This document shows positions 2,639 to 56,081 of a stretch of DNA of 64,000 nucleotides, piece after piece. A model generated the notes under the pieces. It did no database searches, was not told the origin of the DNA, and saw nothing but the letters and a program-made list of their open reading frames with translations. The position numbers and the translations under genes are program-made. Position 1 is the first letter of the stretch, and the number at the start of each line of letters is the position of its first letter. Location: positions 124,001-188,000 of the IMG/VR virus record IMGVR_UViG_3300046171_000231; one strand, written 5' to 3'.

Positions 2639-3071
2639 CGTAGTCTTTACGCATATAGCGTCCTAATATGTTGCTATTATAATACATTGGTGTCCCGTCG
2701 TCAAGTGACTCCATCAACACATTATGTAAAAACAATTGTTTTGTTTCTTCGTAGTTTACTTTTCCAAGGGTTGCGTGGAGGGAGATAATTTCTCTTCTGA
2801 AAGAGTCTTTTCCAATTTCTCTAATATCTCGTTTAAGATCGTCAGAACTTCCATAGTACTTTTTCCAGTCAGACTCTGATGTAACTCTTCGCTTTCCTCC
2901 TTTTGGTTTTCTTTTTTGAGTAAAGTACTTTCTTCCGATATATTGTTTTCCGTTTGTAGTATTGGTGATGCGATAGACGAACCCATAGTAATTCCCGATA
3001 TCATCAGAGGTAAAAGGATTACCTTCATACATCCAAGGGTTTTCATAATCGACTTCCAAAGTAGTAATCAT
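2616..3071 (-). CDS. denA: GIY-YIG endonuclease (T4 endonuclease II/DenA-like)
   Basis: GFVYRITN...KQYIGRK GIY-YIG signature; YYGSS and YNSNI motifs. Confidence 0.75.
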   Translation of the reverse strand: MITTLEVDYENPWMYEGNPFTSDDIGNYYGFVYRITNTTNGKQYIGRKYFTQKRKPKGGKRRVTSESDWKKYYGSSDDLKRDIREIGKDSFRREIISLHATLGKVNYEETKQLFLHNVLMESLDDGTPMYYNSNILGRYMRKDYGEFNKDS

Positions 3072-3125
3072 ATATTAACACATTCATATCTATATATCCA
3101 TAAATATCAATAAACGATTATATAA

Positions 3126-3488
3126 ATGACTGTTTACAGAAAAAACATAACAATCAATGTCGGTGAGACTTTTAGTGAAGATTTAACATTAATGGGTGCT
3201 GATGGTTCTGGTGTTGTTGATTTAACAGGTTATTCTGCACAATCAAAATTAAGAAAGAGTCCCACAAACTATAGGTTTGCAGATATTCAAGTTGGTATTG
3301 TAAATGCATCTCAAGGATTAGTTAATATCTCAATCGCAAGCACAGTAACTAAATTTCTTCAAGGTGGTAGACACGTATATGATATAGTTCTAATCAAACC
3401 TAATGGATTCAAATCTGTTGCAGTTGAAGGTAATGCACTGGTAAGATCAGGTATCAATACCTTTGTACATTACTTTGGTTCTCCATAA
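3126..3488 (+). CDS. Probable virion structural protein (beta-sandwich, BppU N-terminal-like)
   Basis: DLTGYSAQSKLRK...G.V.ISI...T..L..GRHVYDIVL pattern; late-promoter-like CATAAATA upstream. Confidence 0.6.
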   Translation: MTVYRKNITINVGETFSEDLTLMGADGSGVVDLTGYSAQSKLRKSPTNYRFADIQVGIVNASQGLVNISIASTVTKFLQGGRHVYDIVLIKPNGFKSVAVEGNALVRSGINTFVHYFGSP

Positions 3489-3505: not shown

Positions 3506-3889
3506 ATGGCAGTTTTTAGTACAAATTTAGTAATATACAAACATACTGACTTTGAGCAAACCTTTGCACTTGAAGATAGTAACACGAATAGTGTCAAAAA
3601 TTTAACAGGTTTTTCTGCCACTTGCAAAATGCAAAGGACATTAAATCTTGGTAGTTTGACAGAGTTTACAATATCATTTTTGAATGATCGAACACTAGGT
3701 AAAGTTAGAATATCATTAACAGATACACAAACAGCAGCGATTGAAGAAGGTAAATATTTTTATGAGCTAATGTTGACTGACCCAAGTAGCGTTGTAGAAA
3801 GAGTAATTGAAGGAATTGTAATCGTAAAACATCCTGTTACTTGGGATTCACCAACTCCCCTAACTCCTTTTGACGCTCAAGTTCCTTAA
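3506..3889 (+). CDS. Probable virion structural protein, paralog of 3126..3488
   Basis: NLTGFSATCKMQR...GKVRISLT..QT..IEEGKYFYELML mirrors the preceding gene; CATAAATA at 3484-3491. Confidence 0.6.
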   Translation: MAVFSTNLVIYKHTDFEQTFALEDSNTNSVKNLTGFSATCKMQRTLNLGSLTEFTISFLNDRTLGKVRISLTDTQTAAIEEGKYFYELMLTDPSSVVERVIEGIVIVKHPVTWDSPTPLTPFDAQVP

Positions 3890-4095
3890 TCTTCAGGAAA
3901 ATCATAAGGTCCATTCAACTTTTTTTCCATATCTCTTTCGTCTAGGACTTCATTAATAAGTTCTTTGAGTTCTATCTTAAGTGCATCAGATATAAGATTC
4001 ATTTTATTCACCTTCAAAGGTGGAATAGCATCTCTTTGACGCTGTACATCATCAGGAGTCGAACTACTCCCAAAGGTCATCGCTTGTGTATCCAT
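3886..4095 (-). CDS. Hypothetical protein
   Basis: 69-aa ORF in the minus-strand late block. Confidence 0.6.
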   Translation of the reverse strand: MDTQAMTFGSSSTPDDVQRQRDAIPPLKVNKMNLISDALKIELKELINEVLDERDMEKKLNGPYDFPED

Positions 4096-4097
4096 AA

Positions 4098-4232
4098 TTA
4101 TTTTTTATTATATATTAACTCAAAATCCTCAGACACACCAACACCAGGTTGATAGTTCTGAGGATTAAGTTTTGCAAGTTTAACTGACTTTAGACCACCG
4201 ATAATGTCAGCACGATTAATAACAGGTTTCAT
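4098..4232 (-). CDS. Small hypothetical protein (44 aa, below the ORF-track cutoff)
   Basis: MKPVINRADIIGGLKSVKLAKLNPQNYQPGVGVSEDFELIYNKK* fills the gap exactly, 2 nt from both neighbours. Confidence 0.65.
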   Translation of the reverse strand: MKPVINRADIIGGLKSVKLAKLNPQNYQPGVGVSEDFELIYNKK

Positions 4233-4234
4233 AA

Positions 4235-5185
4235 TTATCTAAAGTAACCATCCTCTTTAGTGGTTCCACTTTTCTTTTCATACTCTGTAGCTTTTTTATC
4301 TTGATATTTTTTCCTTGCATCACCTACAGGATCAAATTTCTTTAATTTATCAATACCTTTTTTAGCAAGAACACCACCAAGAACAGCAGCACCAGTTTTT
4401 AATGCCATACCTGCTAATCCTTCATCAAGATTTTTTTTTTGCTCCTCGACAATTGCTTGAATAGTTTCTGCATCCATTTCAGTCATTACATAGTTTGCTT
4501 CTTCGATTGTAGCAGCTTGCTCTGAAGATAACAAGTAATCAAGAACAAAATCATAAGGAGTATACTCTTCCTTTGCCATTTCTGCCTTCTTAGCAAGTCT
4601 TGCCTTTGCCATTGCCTGTGCTTTAAGTTTTTGTTTCTCCTGAAATTCTGCTCTCTGTGCACCAGGAGTTCCTCTCCTATAAAAACCAACTCCTGCACCT
4701 TTCTCTCTTTTGATAAACTTTTTATCAAACTTTTGTTTTTTTGTTAGTGGTTCAGGTTTCTTATCAGGAAAATCTTTTTTGAAATCTCCCTCTGATGGTT
4801 TTCCACCACCCTGTGCACCAACCTCATTAGTTCTCTGTCCAAAGACTACACCTTTTTCTGGTTTGTACTCTGGTTCTGGTTTGGGTTTACCCGACATATT
4901 CTGACTACTTCGAGAAATTCTACCTTGAAATGGTTTTGGTTTTAGACCCAATTCTTCTCTAGTCTTTGGTTTATTTGAATTTCTTGTTATTTTTAATTTA
5001 TCTCTATTTTGTTGATATTTTGGTTTGATCTTTGGTTCATTTGATACTGGTGGTTTTTCTGCAAGTCTTTTTGCAGCAAGTTCTGAACCTCTTGTATTAC
5101 GGTTCTCTTCAAGATTTTCAGGTTTAGAAACCTTGTCAGCATAAATCTTTGCAATCTCTTGATATTCTTTTAAGTCTCTAAACAT
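4235..5185 (-). CDS. Lys-rich late protein, probable internal head/virion protein
   Basis: Very basic; contains a YDFVLDYLL...ATIEEANYVMTEM module; TATAAATA at 5209-5216. Confidence 0.65.
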   Translation of the reverse strand: MFRDLKEYQEIAKIYADKVSKPENLEENRNTRGSELAAKRLAEKPPVSNEPKIKPKYQQNRDKLKITRNSNKPKTREELGLKPKPFQGRISRSSQNMSGKPKPEPEYKPEKGVVFGQRTNEVGAQGGGKPSEGDFKKDFPDKKPEPLTKKQKFDKKFIKREKGAGVGFYRRGTPGAQRAEFQEKQKLKAQAMAKARLAKKAEMAKEEYTPYDFVLDYLLSSEQAATIEEANYVMTEMDAETIQAIVEEQKKNLDEGLAGMALKTGAAVLGGVLAKKGIDKLKKFDPVGDARKKYQDKKATEYEKKSGTTKEDGYFR

Positions 5186-5208
5186 TTTAATTAAATATTC
5201 TACTAACT

Positions 5209-5216
5209 TATTTATA
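5209..5216 (-). promoter_or_regulatory. T4-type late promoter TATAAATA (further copies at 6713, 15087, 16825, 58734, 59626)
   Basis: Exact gp55 consensus immediately upstream of late/structural genes. Confidence 0.75.
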
Positions 5217-5224
5217 TCTAAAAT

Positions 5225-6691
5225 TTATCCAGTGTATTTTGAACCGTATGGTGCGACTTTTTGACGTTTTTTAAGATAGTCTACTTCAGTTGCAATGGAT
5301 TGTGCTGTTCTTCCTTTATCCTTTTTCTTTGGTTTACTAATATCAGATAAGTTAAGTCCCATTCTTGTTACTGTTTTGATTTCTTTTCCATCCTTATCTT
5401 TTACAAATTCTGGTTTTAAGTTTTTCTTAATACGTTCTTTATCTGTTTCTTTTTGAGATGCAGCAGCTCCTCCAACTATTCCTCCTAAACCTGCACCTGT
5501 TAATGCTCTCTTAGCAAAACTACTCATACCTTTTCTAGCAGCGGGACTTAATGCTGCAACTGCACCTACTGTAGCAGCAACTCTACCAACTGGTCCTGCT
5601 TTTGCAAGAGCTTTAATAACTGGAGCTGCTTTCTTTGCACCTGGTAATGAAATTGCTTTTTTAAAGAATGCTCTGTTTTGTGGTCCAATTGCTGCTTTGA
5701 CAACATCTTTCTGTACTAATCTCTTTGTTTTTAAAGCACTTTTTTGTGTTTTACTAAGAATATTTTCAGGTTTTATACCATACTTTTTACTTACGGTTCT
5801 TCTGTATTCAGCAGTAGTAACTTTTTTTCCTACGTCTGGTAGTTTAACTTTTGTTGTTTTTTTTGTAATTTTTTTTATAGGTTCTGTAAAACCTCTATTC
5901 TTCCTAGTAAGATTTTTTGTGATTTTCTTTTTCTTTACAGTTCCTGATTTATCATCAAACGGTGTTTGATCAACTACTTCTGATGGTGTTACTGATGTTT
6001 TAGGTTTCACTCTTTTAAATAAAGTTGGTTCTGAACCTGGTTTCGGTTTGTTTGTCTGACTATAACCAGAAGAACTTACTCTTTTTTGATTTACGTCTTT
6101 TGTAAAATCTTTTGCTTTCTTTGATACTTCAGATTGCTTAACTACCTTTGTTTTAGAACTACCACTTGCTCCTGCAGATCCTTCAGTTGATCCAGATGTG
6201 CCAGTTGCCCTAGAGAAAGCATCTCCTCTTGTAGTTTGACGACTTAATTCTTTTATTTTAGCTATTGTTAATTTTCTTTGCTGAACTAAAGATGGTTTTT
6301 TACCGACTCCTGCATCATATAATCTCTTCTCACTTGCCCTTACGTCTGCGATGGATTTTTTTAAACCAGTTCTATCAGGTGCCTTACTTGTAGTTTTAGG
6401 TTTTCCAAACTGTGGTTTAGGTTCCATACTAGGAACCTTTTTACCTGTGTTTTTAAATGTCGTTTTATCTGGTACAAAAGGACCGCCAGCTTTATATAAA
6501 TCTAATCCTGGTTGTACAACTGTTGGTTTTATATTTTTTCCAAATCCCTTCTGAAAACTCTTCTGACTCTTTTTATATTGCTTTAATGCTTCTGAATCTT
6601 TTTCTAGTAATATTTCAAGATACCTTTGTGCCTCCGACAAAATATAATCAGATTCATTAACAACTTTTCTAAAATTCTCAAACGTCCTCAT
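5225..6691 (-). CDS. Very basic Lys-rich late protein, probable internal head/DNA-binding protein
   Basis: 488-aa K/T/S-rich ORF with N-terminus MRTFENF; TATAAATA at 6713-6720. Confidence 0.65.
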   Translation of the reverse strand: MRTFENFRKVVNESDYILSEAQRYLEILLEKDSEALKQYKKSQKSFQKGFGKNIKPTVVQPGLDLYKAGGPFVPDKTTFKNTGKKVPSMEPKPQFGKPKTTSKAPDRTGLKKSIADVRASEKRLYDAGVGKKPSLVQQRKLTIAKIKELSRQTTRGDAFSRATGTSGSTEGSAGASGSSKTKVVKQSEVSKKAKDFTKDVNQKRVSSSGYSQTNKPKPGSEPTLFKRVKPKTSVTPSEVVDQTPFDDKSGTVKKKKITKNLTRKNRGFTEPIKKITKKTTKVKLPDVGKKVTTAEYRRTVSKKYGIKPENILSKTQKSALKTKRLVQKDVVKAAIGPQNRAFFKKAISLPGAKKAAPVIKALAKAGPVGRVAATVGAVAALSPAARKGMSSFAKRALTGAGLGGIVGGAAASQKETDKERIKKNLKPEFVKDKDGKEIKTVTRMGLNLSDISKPKKKDKGRTAQSIATEVDYLKKRQKVAPYGSKYTG

Positions 6692-7672: not shown

Positions 7673-8849
7673 TAAAAGTATCCTTTTTCACATCCTGTTT
7701 AATACCACCGACAATGTAGGATTCTACTTCTGTCTCCTGTGGTGCCACTTGTAATCCTTTTGAAGATATCCAATGCTCTGTCCAAGGTAATGGATTGTTT
7801 CTTGCTGCAATGTCATAAACTGGTTTCAATCCAATTGCTCTCATTCTACGATTTGCTATCCATTCAACATATTGATGAAGTAGTTTGTCATTGAGACCAA
7901 TCATACTTCCATTTGTAAATAGATACTCTGCCCATCGCTTCTCTTCGTTTACACAACGATCAAACATACTATAAGTCCACTGCTCTTCTTCTTTGATGAT
8001 TTCCTTCATCTGTTTGTCGTCACCCTTTCTCCAGTTGTTTATAATATTTTGAGTTATTGCCAAATGGAGGTTTTCATCTCTAGCAATAAGCGAAATGATT
8101 TTCGCAGATCCTTCCATGAGTTTAAGCTCACCAAAAGCAAAACTACAAGCGAAAGATACGTAAAAGCGGATACCTTCCAAAATGTTGACATTAGTAACTG
8201 CACGATAAAGTTTCCTCTTTAATTCTTTTGTTTCCCACTCTGCTGTAGGACTTCCTTTCCAACCTTCTTTCCAGAAGTTACCTGTATCATACTGATGTGC
8301 TTCGTTTATAAAGGTATCATATGACTCTGTAACACTTGATGCTCTGTCTAGGATACGATCATCAGATAGTATCTTATCAAAGACTTCAGATGGGTCTGAG
8401 TATACATTCTTAATAACATATGTGTATGAACGTGAGTGTATCATTTCCATAAATGACCATACTTCCATACAAGCTTCTAACTCAGGTAGAGAACAATATG
8501 GTAAAAATGCCATACCTGGTGCACGACCCTGTACTGAGTCGAGCATAATCTGATACTTAAGATTAGATGTATAAATGTGTTTCTGCTCTGGACGTAGTGA
8601 TTGATAATCGCCACGATCTTTTTGTAATGATACCTCTTCTGGTCTCCAGAAATATCCTAATTGAGACTTTGTTAAATTCTCAAATGCAGGATACTTAAAG
8701 TTATCATATCTTTGAACTCCTAAAGGTTTGCCAAAAAACATAGGTTGTTTTTTTGTGTCGCATTCCTCTGTGTTAAAGACAGTCATGCCTTTAAGATTTG
8801 TCATTGATTTTTTTCCGATAGGTGAAACTTTAAATTGAACAGGATTCAC
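7656..8849 (-). CDS. nrdB: Ribonucleotide reductase class Ia beta subunit
   Basis: FWRPEEVSL, EMIHSRSY, EGIRFYVSF and IARDENLH diiron motifs; VAPQETE tail. Confidence 0.97.
   Translation of the reverse strand: MNPVQFKVSPIGKKSMTNLKGMTVFNTEECDTKKQPMFFGKPLGVQRYDNFKYPAFENLTKSQLGYFWRPEEVSLQKDRGDYQSLRPEQKHIYTSNLKYQIMLDSVQGRAPGMAFLPYCSLPELEACMEVWSFMEMIHSRSYTYVIKNVYSDPSEVFDKILSDDRILDRASSVTESYDTFINEAHQYDTGNFWKEGWKGSPTAEWETKELKRKLYRAVTNVNILEGIRFYVSFACSFAFGELKLMEGSAKIISLIARDENLHLAITQNIINNWRKGDDKQMKEIIKEEEQWTYSMFDRCVNEEKRWAEYLFTNGSMIGLNDKLLHQYVEWIANRRMRAIGLKPVYDIAARNNPLPWTEHWISSKGLQVAPQETEVESYIVGGIKQDVKKDTFSGFKL

Positions 8850-28857: not shown

Positions 28858-28868
<11 letters not shown>
28488..28868 (-). 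CDS. gp62: Clamp loader small subunit (T4 gp62)
   Basis: [11 protein letters not shown]...YPPYIINR...QYDFYIN...RFSPW; probable true start at 28868. Confidence 0.88.
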
Positions 28869-31607
<2,739 letters not shown>

Positions 31608-36707: not shown

Positions 36708-38252
36708 TTAAGAATAAATGTTATCTTTTAGAAATTGATAGTGAGTTGGTTGATTATCAACCCACTTCATAATAGTCTTACGATGTTGTTGCCATTGTTC
36801 ATGTAATTTATCTATATTTTTATCATTTGAAATTTGTTGAAGAACATATTTTTCATTTAAAGGATTATTACCTAAACCAGCTGCGATATATAACCACCCA
36901 TCATTTTCACTTGAGTCAAACTTCATAATTTTATTCATAGAATCTTTACTTGTACTAACGTTTAAACAATCTCTCCAATATTCTGTATCTGTTCTTTGAG
37001 ACAGTGTATAGTGTGCAAGCACAAAATTTTTGTAAGTATCCATCATTGCATCTGTAGAATTATTAAAAAAGTCAATATCAAATTGTGTTACGAATGAATC
37101 TCTTCTTACAAGAGTATCACATAATACGATAGCACATTGATGAGATGTTAATAATCCAGTGGATTCTAATGGTTCTAGGAAACCATATGACAATCCAATT
37201 GCTACACAATTTTTCTTCCAAGCAACATCATGTTTTCCATGTTTAATTTTTATATGTTCAAATTCTACTTTTTCATCTACTTCAGAATTAAATCCTTTAG
37301 ATTTTTTCTTAAAAAATCTTTTACTTAAATATTGTTTAAATTCATTTTCTGCTTTTTCTTGACTTGTGTATTTACTACTATAAACATATCCTGTTCCAAT
37401 TCTATCCCAGAGAGGAATATTCCAACACCATCCATTTTCAAGAGCAACGTTATCTGTGTAAGTAGACATTTCACTCTCAATATTATTATACTCAATGTTT
37501 GCTTTTATTGCACTATCATTAAACAATTCATTTTGAAATGAGCGAAATGGAACATTTAAATATTTTTCTAAAAGTAAAGATTTAAATCCTGTACAATCAA
37601 CATATAAATCTGATTTAATACTTTCATTATCGACAGTTATTAATTTGCAAATACTTTCATCAGAATTCAATATAATATCTTTAATTTCAGTTATTTTATG
37701 AATTACTCCATTCGGAATACAATGTTCATCTCTTAAATATTTTCCAAATAATTCTGCATCTAAATGATAAGCTATATCATCTGCTAAATTAAAATTACCT
37801 ATACTCATATCTGAATTAACAGGTATTTTAGATTTCTCTGCTATAAATGTATTATGATTTACAAATCTAGAAAACTCTTCATATGGATATAATTTTTTTC
37901 CAAATTTAGAACGGAGTAGAAAAAATTCAATTGCATTATTTTTGTAAGTATCTTTTAAGTCATATTTTCCAAATGGATATTGAAATCTTTCTCCTTGACC
38001 TTCTCTCCAGTTTTTAAATGCAATAGATGTCTTATAAGTTGCTTTACATTTTGGCATCCACTCACTATCATCTAATTCTAATCTATTAAGTAATTCATTA
38101 AATTTTTGTAAGGTTGATTCACCAACACCTATAGTTTTTATCTTTTGAGATTCTATTAAGGTAATTTTTATATTTGAATACTTAGATAATAAGGCTGCTG
38201 TCATCCATCCTGCAGAACCACCACCAACTATAGTGACAGATTTTATCTTCAT
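36708..38252 (-). CDS. Flavin-dependent (tryptophan halogenase-like) halogenase, intact
   Basis: IVGGGSAG, GVGEST, AYHLDA, GWCWNIP, FLEPLEST and HY...RTDTEYW motifs. Confidence 0.9.
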   Translation of the reverse strand: MKIKSVTIVGGGSAGWMTAALLSKYSNIKITLIESQKIKTIGVGESTLQKFNELLNRLELDDSEWMPKCKATYKTSIAFKNWREGQGERFQYPFGKYDLKDTYKNNAIEFFLLRSKFGKKLYPYEEFSRFVNHNTFIAEKSKIPVNSDMSIGNFNLADDIAYHLDAELFGKYLRDEHCIPNGVIHKITEIKDIILNSDESICKLITVDNESIKSDLYVDCTGFKSLLLEKYLNVPFRSFQNELFNDSAIKANIEYNNIESEMSTYTDNVALENGWCWNIPLWDRIGTGYVYSSKYTSQEKAENEFKQYLSKRFFKKKSKGFNSEVDEKVEFEHIKIKHGKHDVAWKKNCVAIGLSYGFLEPLESTGLLTSHQCAIVLCDTLVRRDSFVTQFDIDFFNNSTDAMMDTYKNFVLAHYTLSQRTDTEYWRDCLNVSTSKDSMNKIMKFDSSENDGWLYIAAGLGNNPLNEKYVLQQISNDKNIDKLHEQWQQHRKTIMKWVDNQPTHYQFLKDNIYS

Positions 38253-42418: not shown

Positions 42419-44653
42419 TCAAGCTACCAATTCTATAAATTCACTTAATATCTTTTTATTCATCTTCTTACCCTTAAGACTTTTAGTAAATGCTCTCTTT
42501 ATCTCTGCTTTAGTTGCATCTTCTTTAACTTCAAACTCTCCATCATTATTCAAAGCAGATGATGCCATACCAAAGTAAGTGTGATATCCAGATGTAGTGA
42601 TTGCAAAAGACCTTTCCTTCTTCCAACGATGCATCATTTTTATTGATTCTGGAGTTTCATATCCACAATATCTACGAATGAATGAACCACCTTCACGACT
42701 TACAAGAACACGAATACCAATGAAATTAGTTTGTGGGAAACTATCTTTTAGATTTTCAAGTAACATATCAGTTGCTTCATATCTACCAGAGTCTTTTGAA
42801 AGATAAGTCTTACCTAACTTACGGTCACGCAATACACAACCATCACTAAAATAGTTTGTACCCATATATGGTTCATCTTCCCATTGTCTTTGAACCTCAC
42901 GATGATAACGAAGTGGTTGACTTTCTCCATCAGTAAGCACAACACATTGTACTTTCTCTGCACCAGTTCTCTTTTGAAAATCAGGAAGTAATGTGTGTAA
43001 AGTAACCATTGCTTCATTCAAAGGTGTTCCAGATAATCTATATCCATATGGCACATCTAGGTAAGGTGTATTCATATTCCAAGCAAATATACACGCAGAC
43101 CTCCAAATATTAATCATTTGTGTATCTAAATCTTTTGACCTAGTTTGATTACTAAACATATTCAATAAAGCAAATTGGTTGTTGACTTCTGCCATCATAT
43201 CCTTTGGTTCATAGAAAGTCTCTCCATTTGCATGCATAGCTGGTCTAGGATAGTCTGATGTAAATGCATATACATCATAAGGTATTTGAACTTTACGACA
43301 GAACCAGATTAGATTATAGAGTTGCTTAAGAGTATCGAGTAAAACATTGTTCATTGAACCAGACCAATCAAGTATGAATACAAGTCCGTGATTCTTACCA
43401 TCAGGAAGAACAGTAACTTTCTTGAAAAGGTCTTCACTAAATTTGTAATTGATAAGTTTAGTTGTATCAAGAACACCAGTGCGACTTGTAGTAGCACGAG
43501 CATATGCAGATGCAGACTTCTTACACTCAAACTCTTTGACAAGATAGTTTACTTCTTTCTGTGCAGACTTTTTGAATGCATAGAAGTCTTTATCTAATTC
43601 TGCAAATGGGTCATAAGATTCTGGGATTCTATCAGGATTGCAAAGTGAAGTAAAGTAGTTTGGATTTTCTTTGAACTGTTTTTGTATTCTCCAATTTAAA
43701 TTAGTCCAATGCTCATCAAATGCTTTATGTACTTTTTCATTTGAGATTACTACTTTTTTGATATCTACCTTTGGCAATTCAATGTAATGATTCTCACGAG
43801 TACCTTTGTTTACTAAATCTTTAAGTGCTTCATCAAGTGCATCCATAGTCTCAACTTCTGGTTCTTGTGGTTCATCAAGTGCCTGAGTGCCACCACTGAT
43901 TTTATCCATCATATTTTCAATCTCTTCAAGTGTTGGTTCTTGAGATTGTGGTTTCTGATAATCTAAATCTACTTCTTCTCCAGACTCTTCTGATTCTGAT
44001 TTAGGTGAACCACTTAAACCTTCATCACCTAAATCTATACCCATATCATTTTCTACTTCTTGTCTTTCTTGTCTATCTTCTTCTATCTTCTGCTTTGTTA
44101 AGTCATACAACTGCTTTGCAAGAACAAGGACTTCATCAAATGTCTCTGCTAATTCAATCTTACTTACAAGTAAATTCTCTTCAATATCAAAGTCAATATC
44201 TACAAAGTGACCAATCTTGAAGTGTAGATTAACTCTATCTGCAAGGTTTAACTCATCTAGGTCTTTGTTTTCAATCTCAAAGAAATCCTTATCTGATAAT
44301 TCGTGGTATGCATTATAGAATGTCTTGTTTAATCCTTCATATCTTCTCTTGATTAACTTTTCAATACGAGCATCTTCAACAACATTAACAAACTGTTGAG
44401 GTACTTTTACCTCTTTCCACCACTCTGTATCAGGTGTGTAGAGTGCGTGTCCAACTTCGTGACCAACTAACATATCAATTACTCCGTTACTTGCTTTCTC
44501 CCACATCGGAAGTGTAAGTACACGAGTTTGTACATTGAACTGTGCTGTTTCGACTTGCTTGTGCTCAACTACAATGTCTTCTGTGGCAAGTAACTTAGCA
44601 AGTTGTGATTTGATTTCGTGTTGGACTGTCATAATGTTGTTTGCTTTATACAT
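42419..44653 (-). CDS. CobT-like protein: N-terminal HExxH metallopeptidase-like domain plus C-terminal vWA domain
   Basis: GHEVGHAL, NVVEDARIE, MIDAS DWSGSM, GTPL and LTDGE motifs. Confidence 0.8.
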   Translation of the reverse strand: MYKANNIMTVQHEIKSQLAKLLATEDIVVEHKQVETAQFNVQTRVLTLPMWEKASNGVIDMLVGHEVGHALYTPDTEWWKEVKVPQQFVNVVEDARIEKLIKRRYEGLNKTFYNAYHELSDKDFFEIENKDLDELNLADRVNLHFKIGHFVDIDFDIEENLLVSKIELAETFDEVLVLAKQLYDLTKQKIEEDRQERQEVENDMGIDLGDEGLSGSPKSESEESGEEVDLDYQKPQSQEPTLEEIENMMDKISGGTQALDEPQEPEVETMDALDEALKDLVNKGTRENHYIELPKVDIKKVVISNEKVHKAFDEHWTNLNWRIQKQFKENPNYFTSLCNPDRIPESYDPFAELDKDFYAFKKSAQKEVNYLVKEFECKKSASAYARATTSRTGVLDTTKLINYKFSEDLFKKVTVLPDGKNHGLVFILDWSGSMNNVLLDTLKQLYNLIWFCRKVQIPYDVYAFTSDYPRPAMHANGETFYEPKDMMAEVNNQFALLNMFSNQTRSKDLDTQMINIWRSACIFAWNMNTPYLDVPYGYRLSGTPLNEAMVTLHTLLPDFQKRTGAEKVQCVVLTDGESQPLRYHREVQRQWEDEPYMGTNYFSDGCVLRDRKLGKTYLSKDSGRYEATDMLLENLKDSFPQTNFIGIRVLVSREGGSFIRRYCGYETPESIKMMHRWKKERSFAITTSGYHTYFGMASSALNNDGEFEVKEDATKAEIKRAFTKSLKGKKMNKKILSEFIELVA

Positions 44654-50108: not shown

Positions 50109-50743
50109 ACTCCTATATTATAATTGACAATGCATCTAGTATTACTATTTATAGGTTGTTTTGCTGCGTGATATAACCGACCATCAAATATAACCATTCG
50201 TCCTTGTTTTGGTGTTACACTTTCTTTTATAGTATATTTTTCATTAGGAAGTTCCTCTCTTTCATTGTATATGACAGTATCACCATCACTATCACAAACA
50301 TAATAAAGAGCCACCATAAAATTAATATCCTCTTCTATATCAATATGTGCTGTATCTATTGTTCCGTCCGTGTTTATTGGAAATTGTAAAAAAGAACGTC
50401 CTTGAAGAACTTGTACATTAGAAAGTCCTAGTTTTAAACCAACTCTTTGTAGCATAGGTACAAATAATTCATGATAGTCACTATGTACCCTACCTAGTAA
50501 GTTAGGTTTATGAGGTTCATAATTATCTTCTGTCCATTCTTTAGGTAGGTTAACATATTGATGAGAAAGACCAGGTCTATGTTTACTATCATCATCAAAA
50601 GCTACTGTAACATCTTCAATATAATGCCAAGGAAACTGTAGTCCAGTATGATCTATTCCACCAAGTAATTCTGTTTTTATTTTATTTTGATAATCTTTTT
50701 CAATAAAGTCATCAATGACCATAATTTGATTTTTAAATTTCAT
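50105..50743 (-). CDS. 2OG-Fe(II) oxygenase superfamily protein
   Basis: AHID (HxD)...YYVCDSDGDT...PKQGRMVIFDGRLYHA...RCIVNYN. Confidence 0.85.
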   Translation of the reverse strand: MKFKNQIMVIDDFIEKDYQNKIKTELLGGIDHTGLQFPWHYIEDVTVAFDDDSKHRPGLSHQYVNLPKEWTEDNYEPHKPNLLGRVHSDYHELFVPMLQRVGLKLGLSNVQVLQGRSFLQFPINTDGTIDTAHIDIEEDINFMVALYYVCDSDGDTVIYNEREELPNEKYTIKESVTPKQGRMVIFDGRLYHAAKQPINSNTRCIVNYNIGV

Positions 50744-52209
50744 TAATTTTTCAAAGGTATTTTTACAATGTCATAGTTAAAATTCTCTTCATTATACACT
50801 TTTATTCTCTCAATGAGATGGTTCAGTGTATAATTTCTTCTTGATTTGTAACTAATATCATCGGCAATATCATATAGAGTTGCCTTTGTTTTATTGTTTC
50901 CCTTTCTTAAGACTCTTCCGATTGATTGAAGGTTTCGTATTCGAGATTTAGATGGGGAAGCAAAGATGACATTATGAAGGTTCTTAATGTTGATTCCTGT
51001 TGAGAAGGTTCCGTATGAGGCAATAATGATTGCGTTATTCTCCATCTCTGTAATTGAGCGAACCTCTTCTCGATCTTCTGTTGCAACTCCTCCGTGTACG
51101 AAGAAGACTTGTCGTTGTTCAAGTACATTGCTCTCCTGTATTAAATTATATAGCGGTTCTCCGTGTCCTTCGACCCTTGCAAATAGAATTAATGTATTAC
51201 CTTTAAGATCAAGGGCAAGATTTTTAATAAAATTATTTCTCTTTTGATGTCCAATAATATATTGAATCTCATCCTCAAATGTCTCAAATTTATTTGGTGA
51301 GTGTTTCAATAGAAGCACATTAATATCCAACGTCGCTACATGACCTTTCTTCATAAGCTCGTCTGTCTTAATAATTTTATAAGAAGGACCAAATAAACCT
51401 TCTAATACCCACTTATGGGTCTGTGTTCCATCAAGAGTTCCTGTGAAACCAAAACGATACTTGGCATTATCAAGTTTTGACATTATAGATATTAATGACT
51501 TTGATTTAAACTGATGTGCCTCATCTCCGATTACACATCCAAAACGATTAAAGTACTTACGAGGAAGTTTGTAGATCGATTGCCAAGTTGTAATGATTAC
51601 TTGAGAATCTGTTTCTCTTTCTTTACCTGCATATATCTTGTGACAAAATGAGCCAACTTCCCAACCATAATCCTCGAAATCTTTATACATCTGTTCTACT
51701 AAAGATGTCGTCGGAACTACTATCAGAATACTTAGTTTTCTTTCAACGTAATATCTCACAATCCCGTATATCATCAGCGACTTTCCTGAAGCAGTTGGAG
51801 ATATCAATAACCTACGATTGTATTTTAAAGCGTCGTGTACTCCCTGAATCTGATAATCTCTAGGTTTATATTTACTTACAGCGTTTAAATAATCTTTGAC
51901 ACCCTCTTCACATATACCATCATTTACCTCAAAAGGTAAACCATAGAACTTGCTTGGTTGAAAATCATATGTATATCCGTGGTCTTTACAGAACTGTACG
52001 ATCTTATCTAACAGTCCGACATATATTTGATTGTTCTGAATATTAAATAACCTTATCTTTCCGTCCCAATACTTATTCTTATAAGTTGGCATAAACTTTG
52101 CACCTGGTACTTCAAAGGTGAAATAGTCTGCTAACTCATAATAAACATGCATTTCAGACTCAATCTGAAGATGCACTTCATTCTTTTTTGATATTATCAA
52201 ATGCGACAT
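50743..52209 (-). CDS. uvsW: SF2 RNA-DNA/DNA-DNA helicase UvsW
   Basis: PRDYQ, SPTASGKS, GDEAH, FTGT and QSIGRVLR motifs. Confidence 0.95.
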   Translation of the reverse strand: MSHLIISKKNEVHLQIESEMHVYYELADYFTFEVPGAKFMPTYKNKYWDGKIRLFNIQNNQIYVGLLDKIVQFCKDHGYTYDFQPSKFYGLPFEVNDGICEEGVKDYLNAVSKYKPRDYQIQGVHDALKYNRRLLISPTASGKSLMIYGIVRYYVERKLSILIVVPTTSLVEQMYKDFEDYGWEVGSFCHKIYAGKERETDSQVIITTWQSIYKLPRKYFNRFGCVIGDEAHQFKSKSLISIMSKLDNAKYRFGFTGTLDGTQTHKWVLEGLFGPSYKIIKTDELMKKGHVATLDINVLLLKHSPNKFETFEDEIQYIIGHQKRNNFIKNLALDLKGNTLILFARVEGHGEPLYNLIQESNVLEQRQVFFVHGGVATEDREEVRSITEMENNAIIIASYGTFSTGINIKNLHNVIFASPSKSRIRNLQSIGRVLRKGNNKTKATLYDIADDISYKSRRNYTLNHLIERIKVYNEENFNYDIVKIPLKN

Positions 52210-52250
52210 AACATCGATCAATATCAATTATTTAGTCGTGTTTTATAAAC

Positions 52251-52406: not shown

Positions 52407-52466
52407 AGTAATCTCTTTCGTCCTGAATATTCTATATTCTAAATAAATTAGTTTTGCTTTAAATTC

Positions 52467-53267
52467 ATGACAAAGTTAATTGAACCTAAAAAATATACGA
52501 AGACACTTGACCTTTTGAGGTCATTTTTTTTGTCTAGAGGTTTTTTAGAAGTCCATACCCAAAACCGTCTAAGTATTCTCGCTGCTTGTGAAGATCCAGA
52601 AACAGTAGCAACATATGAATATAATGGTGAAGTGTGGCCGTTACCACAAACGGGACAAATGTGGTTGGAGTATGAGTTACTTAAAAATCCTGATGTGCCT
52701 GGTTTCTTTTGTTTATCGACTTCATATCGACAAGAACCAAATCCAGTTGCTGGTAGACACGAAGTAATCTTTCCCATGTTTGAGTTTGAAATGCATGGTG
52801 GTGTTGATGCACTCGAAGAGATGGAGAAAGATTTAGTTGCACATTTAGGAATTGATCTTAATCATTCTCAGATAAAAAGTTATAAACTATGGCAGAAAAT
52901 ATTTGGTCATGAAGAATTAGATCACGCTGATGAATCTCTCATACAAACAGGTATGATTACAGATTTTCCTGAGTGGACTTCACCTTTCTGGAATATGGCA
53001 AGAAATGAGGATGATACTAGTAAAAAGATTGATGTAATCTTAAATGGTATGGAAACAATTGGTAGTGCAGAACGCAGTACTGACAAAAAACAAATGCGTG
53101 ATACCTTTCATACAATATCTGATGGACAGTATGCTGACCTTCTTTTCAAATTATTTGGTAAGGAAAGAGTTGAGAAAGAATTAGAAGAGTTCTTAGAGTT
53201 CGATTTCTTCCCCAGAAGTGGTGGAGGTATTGGTGTTACTCGTATAATGGATGCGATTCCTGATTAA
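52467..53267 (+). CDS. Stand-alone class II aminoacyl-tRNA synthetase catalytic domain (AsnRS/asparagine synthetase A-like)
   Basis: Motif 1 RSFFLSRGFLEVHT, QTGQMWLE, motif 2 YRQE...RH...FPMFEFE and motif 3 SGGGIGVTR; no anticodon-binding domain. Confidence 0.8.
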   Translation: MTKLIEPKKYTKTLDLLRSFFLSRGFLEVHTQNRLSILAACEDPETVATYEYNGEVWPLPQTGQMWLEYELLKNPDVPGFFCLSTSYRQEPNPVAGRHEVIFPMFEFEMHGGVDALEEMEKDLVAHLGIDLNHSQIKSYKLWQKIFGHEELDHADESLIQTGMITDFPEWTSPFWNMARNEDDTSKKIDVILNGMETIGSAERSTDKKQMRDTFHTISDGQYADLLFKLFGKERVEKELEEFLEFDFFPRSGGGIGVTRIMDAIPD

Positions 53268-53695
53268 TTATATCCTGATTGAAACTTATTCCATTCAATT
53301 GCATTTTTAATTTGATATGTTCGATTAGATACTGCTCTTATAACTTCTTCTAAAAATTTAAGCATAATATCATAGTATTTAATTTTCATATCAACTTTAT
53401 TCATTCTATCGTCTGCTTCAAGATGTCTTTGGATAGCATCTTTTTCACGAACCTTATATGGAAATGGTTCTTCGATATATGCTTCTGCTGGTGCCTTACC
53501 TGTGTAATAATTATATCTTTCTAATCTAACTTTACTATATTGTGTTCTTGCCTTCTCTCTCATTAAAGTAATTGTATTATAAAGTGTATAATACTTTGAG
53601 TGAAGTTGAGGTATTTTTAAAGATTCATCATGTAAATTATCAGGATCGATATGAGAATCTTTTTCCCACATCTCCTGTATTTGTTCAAGATTCAT
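53264..53695 (-). CDS. uvsY: Recombination mediator UvsY
   Basis: WEKDSHID...ESLKIPQLHSKY...RTYQIKNAIEW. Confidence 0.88.
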   Translation of the reverse strand: MNLEQIQEMWEKDSHIDPDNLHDESLKIPQLHSKYYTLYNTITLMREKARTQYSKVRLERYNYYTGKAPAEAYIEEPFPYKVREKDAIQRHLEADDRMNKVDMKIKYYDIMLKFLEEVIRAVSNRTYQIKNAIEWNKFQSGYN

Positions 53696-54249: not shown

Positions 54250-54687
54250 TTATCTTTGAGTGAAATCAATCCCTTCCAAGTGGTCATATTCGTGTTGAAA
54301 GACTCTTGCTGCAAAACCATCTAGTTTTATTTTATGCTCTTTTTTATCCTCGTCCTCATATTTTACAATGATTCGATTTGGTCTATTGACATTTATAATC
54401 TCATCAGGATAGGATAAACATCCTTCTTCAAACCAACCACAATCTTTATATCTTTTGATAATACGAGGATTAAAACAAGTGATTATTTCCTCTGTTTCCA
54501 TATGTATTATCATCACAAATACTCTTTCACTAATACCAATTTGATTTGCAGACAGACCGACCCCCTCGTAATGAATCATATTCTCTTTCAGAATTCGAGA
54601 AATTTCACGACGATCTAAATCCTCACTACACGGTTTCATTTTTTCGTGTAGTATTGGGTGTGTGTTAGGTGTTAGTTGTAGTATCAT
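54250..54687 (-). CDS. def: Peptide deformylase, C-terminally truncated type
   Basis: GVGLSANQ, EGCLS and QHEYDHLEG motifs. Confidence 0.93.
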   Translation of the reverse strand: MILQLTPNTHPILHEKMKPCSEDLDRREISRILKENMIHYEGVGLSANQIGISERVFVMIIHMETEEIITCFNPRIIKRYKDCGWFEEGCLSYPDEIINVNRPNRIIVKYEDEDKKEHKIKLDGFAARVFQHEYDHLEGIDFTQR

Positions 54688-54944: not shown

Positions 54945-56081
54945 TTATTTATCTTCTGGAAAAACTACTCTTATAGCATCAGTTTCTCCTTCAATTTGAG
55001 GAACCCAATAAAGTTCTAATGGAAGTTTGTTAAGTTCAATTTTTGGAAGTCCAACCTTCCAAAGAGGATTCGTATTAATCAGTTTGTTTGCGTAAGAAAT
55101 ATACCAATTAATTGTGTTGTTAAGAATATCTTGAATTGTATCAATCATTTCTTGCCTCTCTGCTTCAATCTGATGTTCGCATATAGATTTACTTGAAGCA
55201 CATACTCGAACTGTTTCACCTTTTGTCCACGCTGCCCAAGTCCACTTTAGAACATCATTAGCATAACGATAATAAAATCCTTCATCAAGTATTTTGTGAT
55301 AACACATAAGACCATCTAAATCTGATACTTTATTTTTGTTAAAACGTGGATTTGATAATATCCATTCTTTTATTTCTTCTGGAGTTGTGTTAAAAACTCT
55401 TGATGACTTTTGTTTAGTATCTAGAATTTTGTTAATTATTCCTCCAATAGTTCCTTTGTGACCTTTCTTTGGAAAACGAAGGTAAGCACCCGATACTTCA
55501 AGTAATAATTTGATATTACTTTTAGTTAGTGGAATATTATCATCTATCATGCATTTCTGTATCTGATAAAAATCTGCTACCTTTGCATTTTCAGAATGAT
55601 CAGTTGCATTTGCTCTCATACCCATTAAGGTCATTGCTGTTGCATCTGATAATCTATCAAGAATAGCATTACCTGTTAACTTGCGTTCATATTTTGCAAT
55701 AGGAGCATGCCTCCATCCATTTTCGTTAAGTGCTCTCACAAGATGACGATGATCAAAATACCATTCTCCATCTGTGTTTATAAAAACACTAACTGGCCAA
55801 CCAAAAAATAACCATAAAAAGTTCATAGTTGATGCAACTAATGATTCAAATTTTTCTTGAATCAGTTCACTTTTACGTGGTGTGTTTTTTGAAGGAGGTG
55901 CTTTTAAGTCCGCTACAGGTCTTGATTCAAACCCCTTAAACGAAAAAAGAGGGTAATCAGGTCCATCTGATTCTCCTACTCCGAGTTGATCAATAGGAAA
56001 ATCTTCCCTATTTTGATCTATTTTTACTGTTTTGTACATATTCTTATTGATATGAATTTGGATTGAACATTGACTCACCAA
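54945..56081 (-). CDS. Hypothetical protein, possible ParB/Srx-like N-terminal domain
   Basis: NTPRK...FESLVAS...GWPVSV...WYFDHRHLVRAL resembles ParB box elements; likely start MYKTV at ~56039. Confidence 0.5.
   Translation of the reverse strand: MVSQCSIQIHINKNMYKTVKIDQNREDFPIDQLGVGESDGPDYPLFSFKGFESRPVADLKAPPSKNTPRKSELIQEKFESLVASTMNFLWLFFGWPVSVFINTDGEWYFDHRHLVRALNENGWRHAPIAKYERKLTGNAILDRLSDATAMTLMGMRANATDHSENAKVADFYQIQKCMIDDNIPLTKSNIKLLLEVSGAYLRFPKKGHKGTIGGIINKILDTKQKSSRVFNTTPEEIKEWILSNPRFNKNKVSDLDGLMCYHKILDEGFYYRYANDVLKWTWAAWTKGETVRVCASSKSICEHQIEAERQEMIDTIQDILNNTINWYISYANKLINTNPLWKVGLPKIELNKLPLELYWVPQIEGETDAIRVVFPEDK

Follow-up and report, generated by a model that had tools for sequence, protein, structure and literature searches.

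An orphaned AsnRS-like catalytic core in a cyanophage genome belongs to an uncharacterized family linked to an odd tRNA in marine phages and to pyrimidine genes in bacteria

We found that a cyanophage gene located in a 64,000-nucleotide stretch of IMG/VR record IMGVR_UViG_3300046171_000231 (positions 124,001 to 188,000; hereafter, the window) encodes a bare catalytic core resembling that of asparaginyl-tRNA synthetase (AsnRS) and representing an uncharacterized family. In marine phages, the gene is part of a mobile cassette composed of a late promoter, the gene itself, and a dedicated tRNA with a GUU anticodon, which has been deleted here. Cellular orthologs (55 to 62% identical, with an identical pocket) have no such tRNA; some cluster with pyrD or pyrF, and pyrB was not detected above its cutoff in any of the 12 carrier genomes tested. 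The real role of the enzyme is therefore probably not any of the textbook ones. An earlier note, based on the sequence alone, had described an inverted stand-alone class II aaRS catalytic domain at this site, and that observation was confirmed. Its functional interpretation, by contrast, was only partly supported. The features of the locus are collected in Table 1.

Table 1. Coordinates of the AsnRS-like gene and associated features in the window
Position	Strand	Feature	Observation
52439..52445	+	CTAAATA, a T4-type late-promoter-like element 28 nt upstream of the ATG; part of the mobile cassette	CTAAATA or TATAAATA lies at -27..-29 in all upstream regions inspected, despite unrelated sequence further upstream
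52467..53267	+	CDS of 266 aa, ATG start; stand-alone class IIb aaRS catalytic core, AsnRS-like, PHROG 29758	Only PF00152 match in the 235.8 kb phage genome
52515..52574	+	Motif 1 region (aa 17-36, LRSFFLSRGFLEVHTQNRLS)	Canonical Pro replaced by Gln32; Q32 conserved at >=90% in phage, pyr-linked, and CPR groups
52638..52676	+	Amino-acid-binding loop (aa 58-70, PLPQTGQMWLEYE)	Leu67-Glu68 match the AsnRS pattern (E. coli AsnRS SGQLNGE vs AspRS SPQLFKQ); the AspRS Asp-binding Lys is absent; invariant across the family
52716..52790	+	Motif 2 (aa 84-108, STSYRQEPNPVAGRHEVIFPMFEFE)	ATP-binding Arg88 and an AsnRS/AspRS-type ...E-x-E ending
53046..53084	+	GMETIGSAERSTD block (aa 194-206)	Arg203 aligns with the side-chain-binding Arg of AsnRS and AspRS; LysRS and EpmA have Glu-Leu here
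53211..53252	+	Motif 3 (aa 249-262, PRSGGGIGVTRIMD)	Contains Arg259
53262..53272		Deletion scar	About 113 bp (9 nt spacer, 86 nt tRNA(GUU), 18 nt tail) present in the 99%-identical relative L085 are missing; junction in a TTA/ATTA microhomology; stop is TAA here and TAG in L085; the CDS now overlaps the end of uvsY by 4 nt

We first examined the protein itself. The Pfam PF00152 profile (class II D/K/N core) matched residues 12 to 261 of 266 with 55.3 bits against a cutoff of 25 (E=7e-15). The protein starts only 11 residues before the core, and neither an OB-fold anticodon-binding domain nor a PF01336 match was found. Its AF2 model had a pLDDT of 95.9 and matched the cores of AsnRS, AspRS, and LysRS. 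Motif 2 (S86-Y-R88-x-E90 ... R97-H98 ... E106-F-E108) and motif 3 (G252-G-G-I-G-V-T-R259) are intact, with R88, R259, and the E106-x-E108 ending conserved, while in motif 1 the helix-strand is present but the usual Pro, which lies at the dimer interface, is Gln throughout the family. The start coordinate given in the note, 52439, turned out to be the first letter of the promoter-like element rather than of the reading frame. The claim that the gene is inverted also held, since it is the only open reading frame of at least 120 aa on the + strand that does not overlap a longer one on the - strand, among about 60 - strand genes.

The claim that the GQMWLE segment is closer to AsnRS than to EpmA held by alignment, by profile search (AsnRS, 5e-14; EpmA, 5e-5), and by structure. 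AsnRS was the best profile match, and the predicted fold aligned with bacterial, archaeal, and human AsnRS at TM scores of 0.74 to 0.79 normalized by the query, although these matches covered only the catalytic part of AsnRS. The pocket has the Asn-type pattern, with a Glu after the xGQ loop and an Arg in the GGSxR block, the pair that reads the Asn side chain. Nevertheless, the protein is not a canonical AsnRS, as it scored 16.8 bits against a cutoff of 342.6 for TIGR00457 and 15.8 against 414 for NF003037, lies about 10 substitutions per site from the E. coli AsnRS core, and has family-specific invariant blocks (AACEDP, WPLPQTGQMWLE, and TSPFWNM).

We then asked whether the protein belongs to one of the two families of truncated paralogs named in the note, and membership in both failed every sequence test. 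Like the archaeal asparagine synthetase AS-AR ("AsnRS2"; PDB 3p8t/1nnh) and bacterial AsnA, which bind Asp/Asn and ATP and act without tRNA, it lacks the anticodon-binding domain. However, the match to AS-AR was weak and partial (3p8t, E=1.8e-4 over about 100 residues), the score against the archaeal-type asparagine synthetase models (NF005052-5/PRK06462) was 12.7 bits against a cutoff of 389 (33 bits for the best cellular ortholog), and AS-AR was not among the top 50 structural neighbors. PF03590 (AsnA) gave no match at E<=1 for the protein and none in the carrier genomes, and the genomic associations (a tRNA cassette and pyr clusters) are different. With EpmA/PoxA/GenX, the EF-P beta-lysine ligase, the protein shares only the general architecture and similar size of a stand-alone class IIb core: it scored 18.6 bits against 286.9 for TIGR00462 and 26.1 against 264 for NF006828, the LysRS-type pocket residues of EpmA are replaced by Asx-type ones, the NGFxEL block of LysRS/EpmA is GSAER here, the ...ELY/...EWY ending is FEFE, and no EF-P/EpmB-type context was found. 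An EpmA-like ligation of an amino acid onto a protein, DNA, or virion target, suggested in the note, has no evidence and is very unlikely; no conserved protein partner gene was seen in phage or cellular neighborhoods; late expression would nevertheless suit a virion target.

The protein is a full-length member of PHROG 29758 (E=8e-151, residues 1 to 266 on profile positions 1 to 267), a phage family of unknown function whose members in P-SSM2, P-SSM5, and P-SSM7, 73 to 80% identical to it, are annotated "tRNA ligase." Literature searches found only that label (T4-GC 194; Sullivan et al. 2010, PMC3037559) and nothing on the tRNA pairing or the pyrimidine link described below.

To characterize the cassette, we compared the flanks of related phage loci. 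The late-type element is more than chance, as CTAAATA or (T)ATAAATA occupied the same position in every upstream region inspected (25 IMG/VR loci plus loci L001, L002, and L085 and the window), while the strict [CT]TAAATA pattern matched 51 of 78 loci counted. Downstream, on the same strand, a tRNA of 85 to 107 nt followed the gene in all 78 assessable IMG/VR loci, at a distance of 8 to 18 nt (about 92 to 94 nt in 4 loci), and the same held for deeper clade members with proteins 60 to 69% identical. This tRNA has a tRNA-Leu-like body with a long variable arm and tRNA-Asn identity: U1-A72, G73, and G34U35U36 are invariant. Its cloverleaf is under selection, with 99.3% of alignment cells paired and 20 of 25 pairs showing compensatory changes. 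Position 37, however, is always a pyrimidine and position 33 varies (U/C/A), both of which are poor for ribosomal decoding. The cassette sits at three unrelated genome positions in relatives, and the P-SSM2 copy lies among nucleotide genes (purH, primase, and nrdA). The note's proposal that the enzyme recaptures NH3 released by GcvP has no support from linkage and was rejected, since the GcvP2-like gene at 28861-30120 is 22 kb away and is not linked to this gene in relatives.

In the window, the promoter-like element is retained but the tRNA is absent, both from the window and from the whole genome, owing to the deletion defined by alignment with L085. The junction was bridged by zero-mismatch contigs in four independent studies, and the tRNA-less form was abundant in runs from four studies (2017-2025). 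A comparison with the tRNA-bearing relative revealed 19 synonymous and only 2 conservative nonsynonymous differences (dN/dS 0.024), indicating purifying selection. It could be argued that the gene is a functionless remnant not yet degraded, since the loss is recent and the proteins are 99% identical, but the purifying selection, the intact family-invariant residues and promoter, and the abundance of the tRNA-less form make this very unlikely.

We next turned to cellular orthologs, searched for in genome contigs with an alignment of 11 sequences. No protein neighbor was generally conserved across all 77 cellular loci, the largest neighbor cluster covering 9 loci. In 9 loci, from Bacteroidota (class 1A PyrD) and from Pasteurellaceae and Alphaproteobacteria (class 2 PyrD), pyrD lies beside the gene, and in loci L109, L117, L121, and L130, pyrF and a small PRTase follow it directly. 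In carrier genomes G003, G106, G108, and G109, the only pyrF match found appears, by score and frame length, to be the adjacent one. pyrB was over its cutoff in 0 of 12 carrier genomes, against 14 of 14 controls, and pyrC was clearly present in only 1 of 12. Within the order of carrier G110, 3 of 3 carriers fell among the 8 of 61 genomes without pyrB (Fisher P=0.0016), and in the class Alphaproteobacteria, used because the order of carrier G108 contained a single genome, 4 of 4 carriers fell among the 59 of 201 without pyrB (about 0.007, computed by hand). These statistics are not phylogenetically corrected, and the anticorrelation is partly confounded by host-dependent lifestyle. Moreover, CPR, Dependentiae, and Rickettsiales carriers, which make up most cellular loci and have the identical active site, mostly lack pyrD (4 of 5) and pyrF (4 of 4), so a dihydroorotate product has no obvious use there. 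Across the tRNA-linked phage, pyr-linked cellular, and CPR groups, 94 of 266 positions, including every pocket residue, are at least 90% conserved and identical, with only one trivial switch.

Complementarity with asnA, asnB, and gatB in the carriers gave a mixed pattern with no clear substitution. Genomes G001, G002, G106, G108, and G109 have neither AsnA nor AsnB, whereas about half of the carriers already have AsnB. Several carriers lack canonical AsnRS, but G003 has one and G002 a divergent one. In the class of G001, 5 of 101 genomes carried the family and 13 of 101 a full-length AsnRS-like gene, with no overlap, although the expected overlap was only 0.65. The one cyanobacterial control (S. 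elongatus), which gives only an indirect hint about the phage host, showed no AsnA and no strong AsnB but has gatB.

What the analysis shows is an intact AsnRS-derived core with the ATP-binding arginines of motifs 2 and 3 and an Asn-type (Glu68/Arg203) pocket but no anticodon-binding domain, in a compact family found in marine T4-like phages, huge phages, and, sporadically, cellular genomes, which in marine phages moves as a promoter-gene-tRNA unit and here has recently lost its tRNA while remaining under purifying selection. Any catalytic activity, including aminoacylation of tRNA-Asn, is inferred. Our preferred, though tentative, inference is that the enzyme is a tRNA-independent adenylate-forming ligase acting on free asparagine (or aspartate), whose product enters pyrimidine synthesis at the level of dihydroorotate, bypassing aspartate carbamoyltransferase and dihydroorotase. 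One possible reaction is Asn + CO2/bicarbonate + ATP -> dihydroorotate, a ureido-ring closure chemically analogous to that of dethiobiotin synthetase, an enzyme of unrelated fold; the genomic position and phyletic pattern of the cellular orthologs mimic those of pyrB/pyrC. In the phage, which has no pyrD or pyrF of its own, the enzyme would act as a nucleotide-supply auxiliary gene using the host's PyrD/E/F. tRNA independence of the core activity is suggested by the cellular orthologs and other phages without such a tRNA and by the retention of the gene in the window. In this view, the cassette tRNA, which keeps exactly the elements read by non-discriminating AspRS (GUU and G73) and GatCAB (U1-A72), would be an accessory scaffold raising tRNA-dependent Asn production in hosts without asparagine synthetase, which would explain why its loss is tolerated here. 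No biochemical data exist, however, the proposed chemistry has no precedent on this fold, and a late promoter fits translation support better than nucleotide synthesis.

A close rival, doubtful in itself but only slightly less likely, is a minimal, anticodon-blind AsnRS that would adenylate Asn and transfer it to a tRNA recognized by its acceptor end (U1-A72 and G73) and, in phages, also by the Leu-type long variable arm, forming an orthogonal pair expressed late to decode AAY codons. Aminoacylation explains more directly the near-universal linkage to a tRNA of matching identity, and the selection on the cloverleaf, the invariant U1-A72, G73, and G34U35U36, the AsnRS-type pocket, the closest structures, the late promoter, and the carriers lacking canonical AsnRS are also in its favor. 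By analogy, catalytic-domain-only pyrrolysyl-tRNA synthetase is a class II core of about 270 aa paired with a structurally unusual dedicated tRNA-Pyl encoded nearby, though it is of a different subclass and uses a different amino acid, and the cassette tRNA reads a sense codon. On the other hand, this rival does not explain the pyrD/pyrF clustering or the absence of pyrB in carriers with an identical active site, nor does it sit easily with positions 33 and 37 of the tRNA, the carriers that already have AsnRS, or the retention of the enzyme after the tRNA loss, when it would have to use host tRNA-Asn. Acceptor-only recognition would not separate tRNA-Asn from tRNA-Gln, as judged from E. coli tRNA identity. 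The protein is also very acidic (net charge, -20) and has no extra RNA-binding module, and by net charge and pI the tRNA-linked clade is no more basic than the cellular ones, although this is not decisive.

The main idea of the note, an ammonia-dependent asparagine synthetase activating the beta-carboxylate of Asp and amidating it with NH3, remains possible but is unlikely. It has precedent in AS-AR, fits the Asx-type pocket and the carriers with neither AsnA nor AsnB, and would link enzyme and tRNA through asparagine, the two together raising the Asn-tRNA supply in phages. Apart from the failed family tests and the carriers that already have AsnB, it is weakened by the fact that carriers without any AsnRS (e.g., G001) could not use free Asn for translation, and it does not explain the pyr clustering, the pyrB absence, or the odd tRNA features. 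Of the note's reading, the stand-alone, AsnRS-like rather than EpmA-like core expressed from its own late-type promoter against the local gene direction was supported, while the two most informative facts, the deleted tRNA and the pyrimidine context of the cellular orthologs, could not be seen from that sequence.

Stand-alone aaRS cores have repeatedly turned out to perform unexpected chemistry (AsnA, EpmA, HisZ, and amino-acid:carrier-protein ligases). The present family is very abundant in the ocean (at least 8000 candidate clusters, all of those scored, matched) and occurs in isolated cyanophages with laboratory hosts (P-SSM2/5/7 on Prochlorococcus NATL1A/2A), yet it has no characterized member. 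The dedicated chimeric tRNA in phages and the pyrD/pyrF clustering with absence of pyrB in bacteria are two independent genomic signals that make its function directly testable. A more far-reaching possibility, unlikely but not excluded, is that the family replaces aspartate carbamoyltransferase and dihydroorotase, making dihydroorotate in one ATP-dependent step from asparagine on an aaRS scaffold, and that marine cyanophages have coupled it to a non-decoding, Leu-bodied tRNA(GUU) on which host ND-AspRS and GatCAB make the asparagine; that would be a tRNA-dependent feed into nucleotide synthesis, with the window showing the enzyme surviving without the scaffold. If the pyrimidine reading is right, the family defines a new entry into de novo pyrimidine synthesis, which would explain why Pasteurellaceae, Aureispira, and others keep pyrD/E/F without pyrB/pyrC and would add a new class of phage nucleotide auxiliary gene. 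If the tRNA reading is right, it is a natural orthogonal AsnRS/tRNA pair with an anticodon-independent synthetase, of interest for phage translation takeover and for genetic-code engineering. Either way, the current database label "tRNA ligase" is uninformative.

The 235.8-kb T4-like cyanomyovirus record of which the window covers positions 124001 to 188000 has a GC content of about 33% and is related to Prochlorococcus phages P-SSM2, P-SSM5, and P-SSM7. The open reading frame of interest is the only substantial one on the + strand among about 60 genes on the - strand, and it lies between uvsY and a 51-aa ORF followed by uvsW. Its product matched Pfam PF00152, the class II D/K/N catalytic core, over residues 12 to 261 at E=7e-15, and no other Pfam family matched; the AF2 model was very confident (pLDDT, 95.9; pTM, 0.92). 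A CTAAATA element precedes the ATG by 28 nt. In all the upstream regions inspected, CTAAATA or TATAAATA stands at -27 to -29, while the sequence further upstream is unrelated, so it is a conserved, cassette-borne, T4-type late-promoter-like element. The observation made in the earlier note, that an inverted stand-alone class II catalytic domain follows a CTAAATA late-type element here, was thus confirmed. A GcvP2-like gene, whose ammonia the note had proposed the enzyme might recapture, is real (glycine dehydrogenase subunit 2 C-terminal domain, E=1.6e-43) but is unlinked to this finding.

Coordinates of the features in the window and in the other sequences compared
Sequence	Coordinates	Strand	Feature
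Window	52439-52445		CTAAATA late-promoter-like element
Window	52467-53267	+	AsnRS-like catalytic core, 266 aa
Window	53264-53695	-	uvsY
Window	50743-52227	-	uvsW
Window	28861-30120	-	GcvP2-like gene
Window	1290-2432	-	Tryptophan-halogenase-family gene (PF04820, E=4e-70)
Window	36711-38252	-	Tryptophan-halogenase-family gene (PF04820, E=9e-107)
Window	54250-54687	-	Peptide deformylase (PF01327, E=7e-40), between gp3 and the capsid module, two genes from the aaRS-like gene
Window	54945-56081	-	Large ORF (378 aa) without a Pfam match, between peptide deformylase and the gp23 major capsid gene
Window	42422-44653	-	Large ORF (744 aa) without a Pfam match
Phage genome, just upstream of the window (G000:C1, locus L179)	123192-123551	-	Weak PRTase-like ORF, about 450 nt before the window start
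P-SSM2, NC_006883.2 (locus L001)	5813-5900		Cassette tRNA found by ARAGORN and Rfam
P-SSM2, NC_006883.2 (locus L001)	7825-7910		tRNA-Asn as annotated (PSSM2_199)
Cellular locus L117	4413-4889		Small PRTase-like protein
Cellular locus L121	4477-4881		Small PRTase-like protein
Cellular locus L130	4514-4915		Small PRTase-like protein
Cellular locus L109	4965-5369		Small PRTase-like protein
Logan contig (locus L093)	2501-3349		Distant family member, protein P0232
Huge phage LR756501, 735 kb (loci L086, L087 with the next row)	88649-89473		Long-branch homolog
Huge phage LR756508, 484 kb	193440-194243		Long-branch homolog
CPR genome from the class sample (G027:C15)	3630-6266		Two tandem full-length, divergent AsnRS-like genes

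We then asked which of the characterized class II families the protein resembles most. A profile of 44 family members searched against solved structures ranked AsnRS of Brugia and human first (E=5e-14 to 4e-13), followed by archaeal/eukaryotic-type AspRS (1.5e-11), Pyrococcus AsnRS (8e-11), EpmA (5e-5), LysRS (about 1e-4), and the archaeal asparagine synthetase AS-AR (1.8e-4). Foldseek gave AsnRS catalytic domains as the nearest folds both in the PDB and among the Swiss-Prot models (TM by query, 0.74 to 0.79), while AS-AR and EpmA were not among the top 50. In an alignment with the Escherichia coli paralogs, the amino-acid loop TGQMW-L67-E68 followed AsnRS (SGQLNG-E) and not AspRS (SPQLF-K-Q), so the Asp-binding Lys is absent. 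Motif 2 ends FEFE, as in AsnRS and AspRS, whereas LysRS and EpmA end ELY/EWY, and GSAE-R203 aligns with the side-chain Arg of AsnRS and AspRS, where LysRS and EpmA have E-L. Motif 3 R259 is present, and the motif 1 Pro is Gln32. No NCBIfam equivalog came near its cutoff, the best score being 30.6 bits against 468, and the only strong family match was PHROG 29758, of unknown function (E=8e-151). Databases call the protein "tRNA ligase," "aspartyl/asparaginyl-tRNA synthetase," or "amino acid-tRNA ligase-related protein," and the only paper found merely lists it as T4-GC 194, present in 2 of 16 cyanomyoviruses. We conclude that it is an AsnRS-derived core with an Asn-type pocket and not a member of AsnRS proper, AS-AR, AsnA, or EpmA. 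The interpretation offered in the earlier note was therefore supported only in part: the greater closeness to AsnRS than to EpmA held, while an AsnA-like asparagine synthetase activity is, in our judgment, unlikely, and an EpmA-like ligase very unlikely.

In P-SSM2, P-SSM5, and P-SSM7 the gene turned out to be followed within about 10 nt by an 86- to 88-nt "tRNA-Asn(GTT)," a partner that could not have been seen from the window alone. In the RefSeq record of P-SSM2 the tRNA-Asn feature is placed about 2 kb away, inside CDS PSSM2_205, whereas ARAGORN and Rfam find the tRNA directly after the "tRNA ligase" gene, as the order of the locus tags implies; the offset is close to the 2007-nt coordinate shift between this record and GU071092, so this looks like an annotation coordinate error. 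Of 80 IMG/VR loci with orthologs (73 to 91% identical), ARAGORN detected this tRNA in 70. A covariance model built from 36 distinct copies detected it in three apparent exceptions (L028, L036, and L068), where the variable arm is longer, and also found it cut off at the contig end in L018, L019, and L040. Loci L011, L015, L018, L019, L028, and L040 have no more than 113 nt of sequence downstream of the gene and L068 has 765 nt; the model recovered a full or contig-truncated copy in all of these except L011 and L015, which have only 2 and 8 nt and cannot be assessed. Every locus that can be assessed thus has the tRNA. It is also present in deeper members of the phage clade with proteins 60 to 69% identical (L088, L099, L100, L104, L105, and L107). 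Cassette tRNAs of 96 to 107 nt with longer variable arms (L028, L036, L068, L099, L100, and L104) were missed by ARAGORN and found only by the dedicated model. Across the clade the variable arm ranges from about 14 nt to more than 30 nt, and one 60%-identical relative (L088) has lost it altogether while keeping GUU-U37.

The cloverleaf of this tRNA, including the long variable arm, was strongly supported, with 99.3% of cells paired and 20 of 25 pairs showing compensatory changes, while slid controls gave no more than 49%. U1-A72, G73, U8, G18G19, and G34U35U36 are invariant, position 37 is always a pyrimidine (U, once C), and position 33 varies (U, C, or A). The body is almost that of bacterial tRNA-Leu, with a D-arm reading GGUGGCGAAAU-UGGUAAACGC, a 3-bp D stem, and a long variable arm, and the best hits of the model in other genomes were all tRNA-Leu (50 to 62 bits), ahead of an ordinary tRNA-Asn at 45 bits. 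The RNA is thus a chimera in which a Leu-type body bears the acceptor end and anticodon of tRNA-Asn, which are the elements read by AsnRS or ND-AspRS (GUU and G73) and by GatCAB (U1-A72), together with an anticodon loop that looks poor for decoding. The most direct reading of the gene-tRNA pair and of the late-promoter-like element is that the enzyme is an anticodon-blind AsnRS charging the cassette tRNA. We regard this as possible but doubtful, ranking only slightly below the explanation we tentatively prefer, since it leaves unexplained the pyrimidine at position 37, the retention of the enzyme after loss of the tRNA, and the pyrimidine gene association described below. The cassette sits at three unrelated genome positions, between purH and the primase/nrdA region in P-SSM2/5, between gp23 and gp3 in P-SSM7, and, inverted, between uvsY and uvsW in this window and in the ENA contig L085, and it is therefore mobile as a unit.

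No tRNA was found in the window or anywhere in the phage genome by ARAGORN, by RF00005, or by the specific model with filters off, the best hit with the last being 12 bits. Contig L085, in contrast, carries a 99%-identical protein in the same inverted position and does have the tRNA. Alignment showed that the window equals L085 minus about 113 bp, comprising a 9-nt spacer, the 86-nt tRNA, and an 18-nt tail. The junction lies in a TTA/ATTA microhomology, the stop codon is TAA here and TAG in L085, and the coding sequence now overlaps uvsY by 4 nt. The junction is not an assembly artifact, as zero-mismatch contigs bridge it in runs from four different studies; other contigs in the same samples enter uvsY from "...CACAG," which matches the 3' end of the tRNA, so both forms probably coexist. 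Between the window and L085 there are 19 synonymous and 2 conservative nonsynonymous differences (dN/dS, 0.024), and all family-invariant residues are intact. The enzyme is being maintained without its tRNA, and that it is merely a decaying remnant is very unlikely.

We next looked for the family outside the marine phages. It occurs in 406 loci among GTDB species representatives at 55 to 62% identity to the window protein, including Saccharibacteria and other CPR, Rickettsiales, Dependentiae, Aureispira/Chitinophagales, Weeksellaceae, Alphaproteobacteria, and Pasteurellaceae, many of them on contigs of hundreds of kilobases to megabases. Its distribution is sporadic, with carriers making up 5 of 101 genomes sampled in one CPR class, 3 of 61 in the order of Aureispira, and 4 of 201 in Alphaproteobacteria. 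None of the cellular loci has the cassette tRNA; only phage-like short contigs binned into MAGs do. Two huge phages carry long-branch homologs (43 to 48% identical) with no tRNA within 6 kb, while their tRNA arrays elsewhere include ordinary tRNA-Leu and, in LR756508, an ordinary 74-nt tRNA-Asn. The tree showed a compact radiation about 10 substitutions per site from the E. coli AsnRS core, with the marine phage clade (support, 99/95) as one of several sister clades. Across the tRNA-linked phage, pyr-linked cellular, and CPR groups, 94 of 266 positions are at least 90% conserved and identical, including every pocket residue, with only one trivial switch, and the chemistry is almost certainly the same everywhere. 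A more distant member (34% identical; L093) lies in a bacterial context, with LpxB upstream and ribosomal proteins L28 and L33 downstream, and has degenerate catalytic residues (GAEH instead of SAER), suggesting inactive or repurposed offshoots of the family; proteins P0172, P0207, and P0265 also lack the motif 2/3 arginines.

Analysis of the cellular neighborhoods revealed an unexpected association with pyrimidine genes. The pyrD gene lies beside the family gene in 9 loci from three distant groups, with two different PyrD classes, and pyrF plus a small unclassified PRTase lie directly downstream in L109, L117, L121, and L130. This PRTase-like protein (134 to 159 aa), which follows pyrF, has no NCBIfam match and only a subthreshold Pfam PRTase hit, and it may be a minimal PyrE or something new. 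The weak PRTase-like ORF of the phage itself (22 to 23 bits, below the Pfam cutoff) showed no similarity to the cellular small PRTases by BLAST. In carrier genomes G004 and G110, pyrF lies within 1.3 to 3.1 kb, and the single pyrF match in carriers G003, G106, G108, and G109 appears to be the neighboring gene, judged by score and frame length. In 12 carrier genomes pyrB was over its cutoff in none, against 14 of 14 controls, the best scores (116 to 160 bits) being probably, by inference, those of OTCase paralogs, and pyrC was clear in only one genome. In the order of G110, 53 of 61 genomes have pyrB, and all 3 carriers are among the 8 that lack it (Fisher P=0.0016), while in Alphaproteobacteria 142 of 201 genomes have pyrB and all 4 carriers lack it (hypergeometric probability of about 0.007, calculated by hand); neither test was corrected for relatedness or lifestyle. 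CPR, Dependentiae, and Rickettsiales carriers, however, mostly lack pyrD (4 of 5) and pyrF (4 of 4), so pyrimidine synthesis cannot be the use of the product in them. The presence of asnS, asnB, and gatB in carriers is mixed. In the CPR class sampled, only 13 of 101 genomes have any full-length AsnRS-like gene, and one of its genomes has two in tandem (275 and 283 bits, below the 342.6 cutoff).

No single mechanism explains every context. Our tentative preference, held with less than even confidence, is that the enzyme is a tRNA-independent Asn/Asp-adenylating ligase whose product enters pyrimidine synthesis at dihydroorotate, replacing PyrB and PyrC. In the phage it would be a nucleotide auxiliary gene, and the cassette tRNA would be an accessory, non-decoding scaffold for tRNA-dependent Asn production by host ND-AspRS and GatCAB. 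This reading accounts for the pyr clustering, the absence of pyrB and pyrC, the identical active sites, the odd anticodon loop, the exact set of conserved tRNA identity elements, and the tolerance of the tRNA loss here, but it fails for CPR-type carriers and is chemically unprecedented, and a function other than any of those considered here is also possible, if unlikely. The analysis itself established the fold, the pocket type, the cassette, the structure and identity elements of the tRNA, the deletion, the purifying selection, and the phyletic and neighborhood patterns, while the substrate, the product, the role of the tRNA, and the Asn metabolism of the host are inferred. For the last there is only an indirect hint, in that the Synechococcus elongatus control has no AsnA and no strong AsnB and has gatB.

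The gene itself belongs to an already cataloged but uncharacterized phage family. In the searchable literature we found no description of the promoter-gene-chimeric-tRNA cassette, of its natural tRNA-less derivative in this window, of the existence of near-identical cellular orthologs, or of their tie to pyrD/pyrF in pyrB-less genomes. We regard the family as one of aaRS-core paralogs distinct from AsnA, AS-AR, and EpmA, and its interest is high because two orthogonal genomic signals make its function experimentally decidable.
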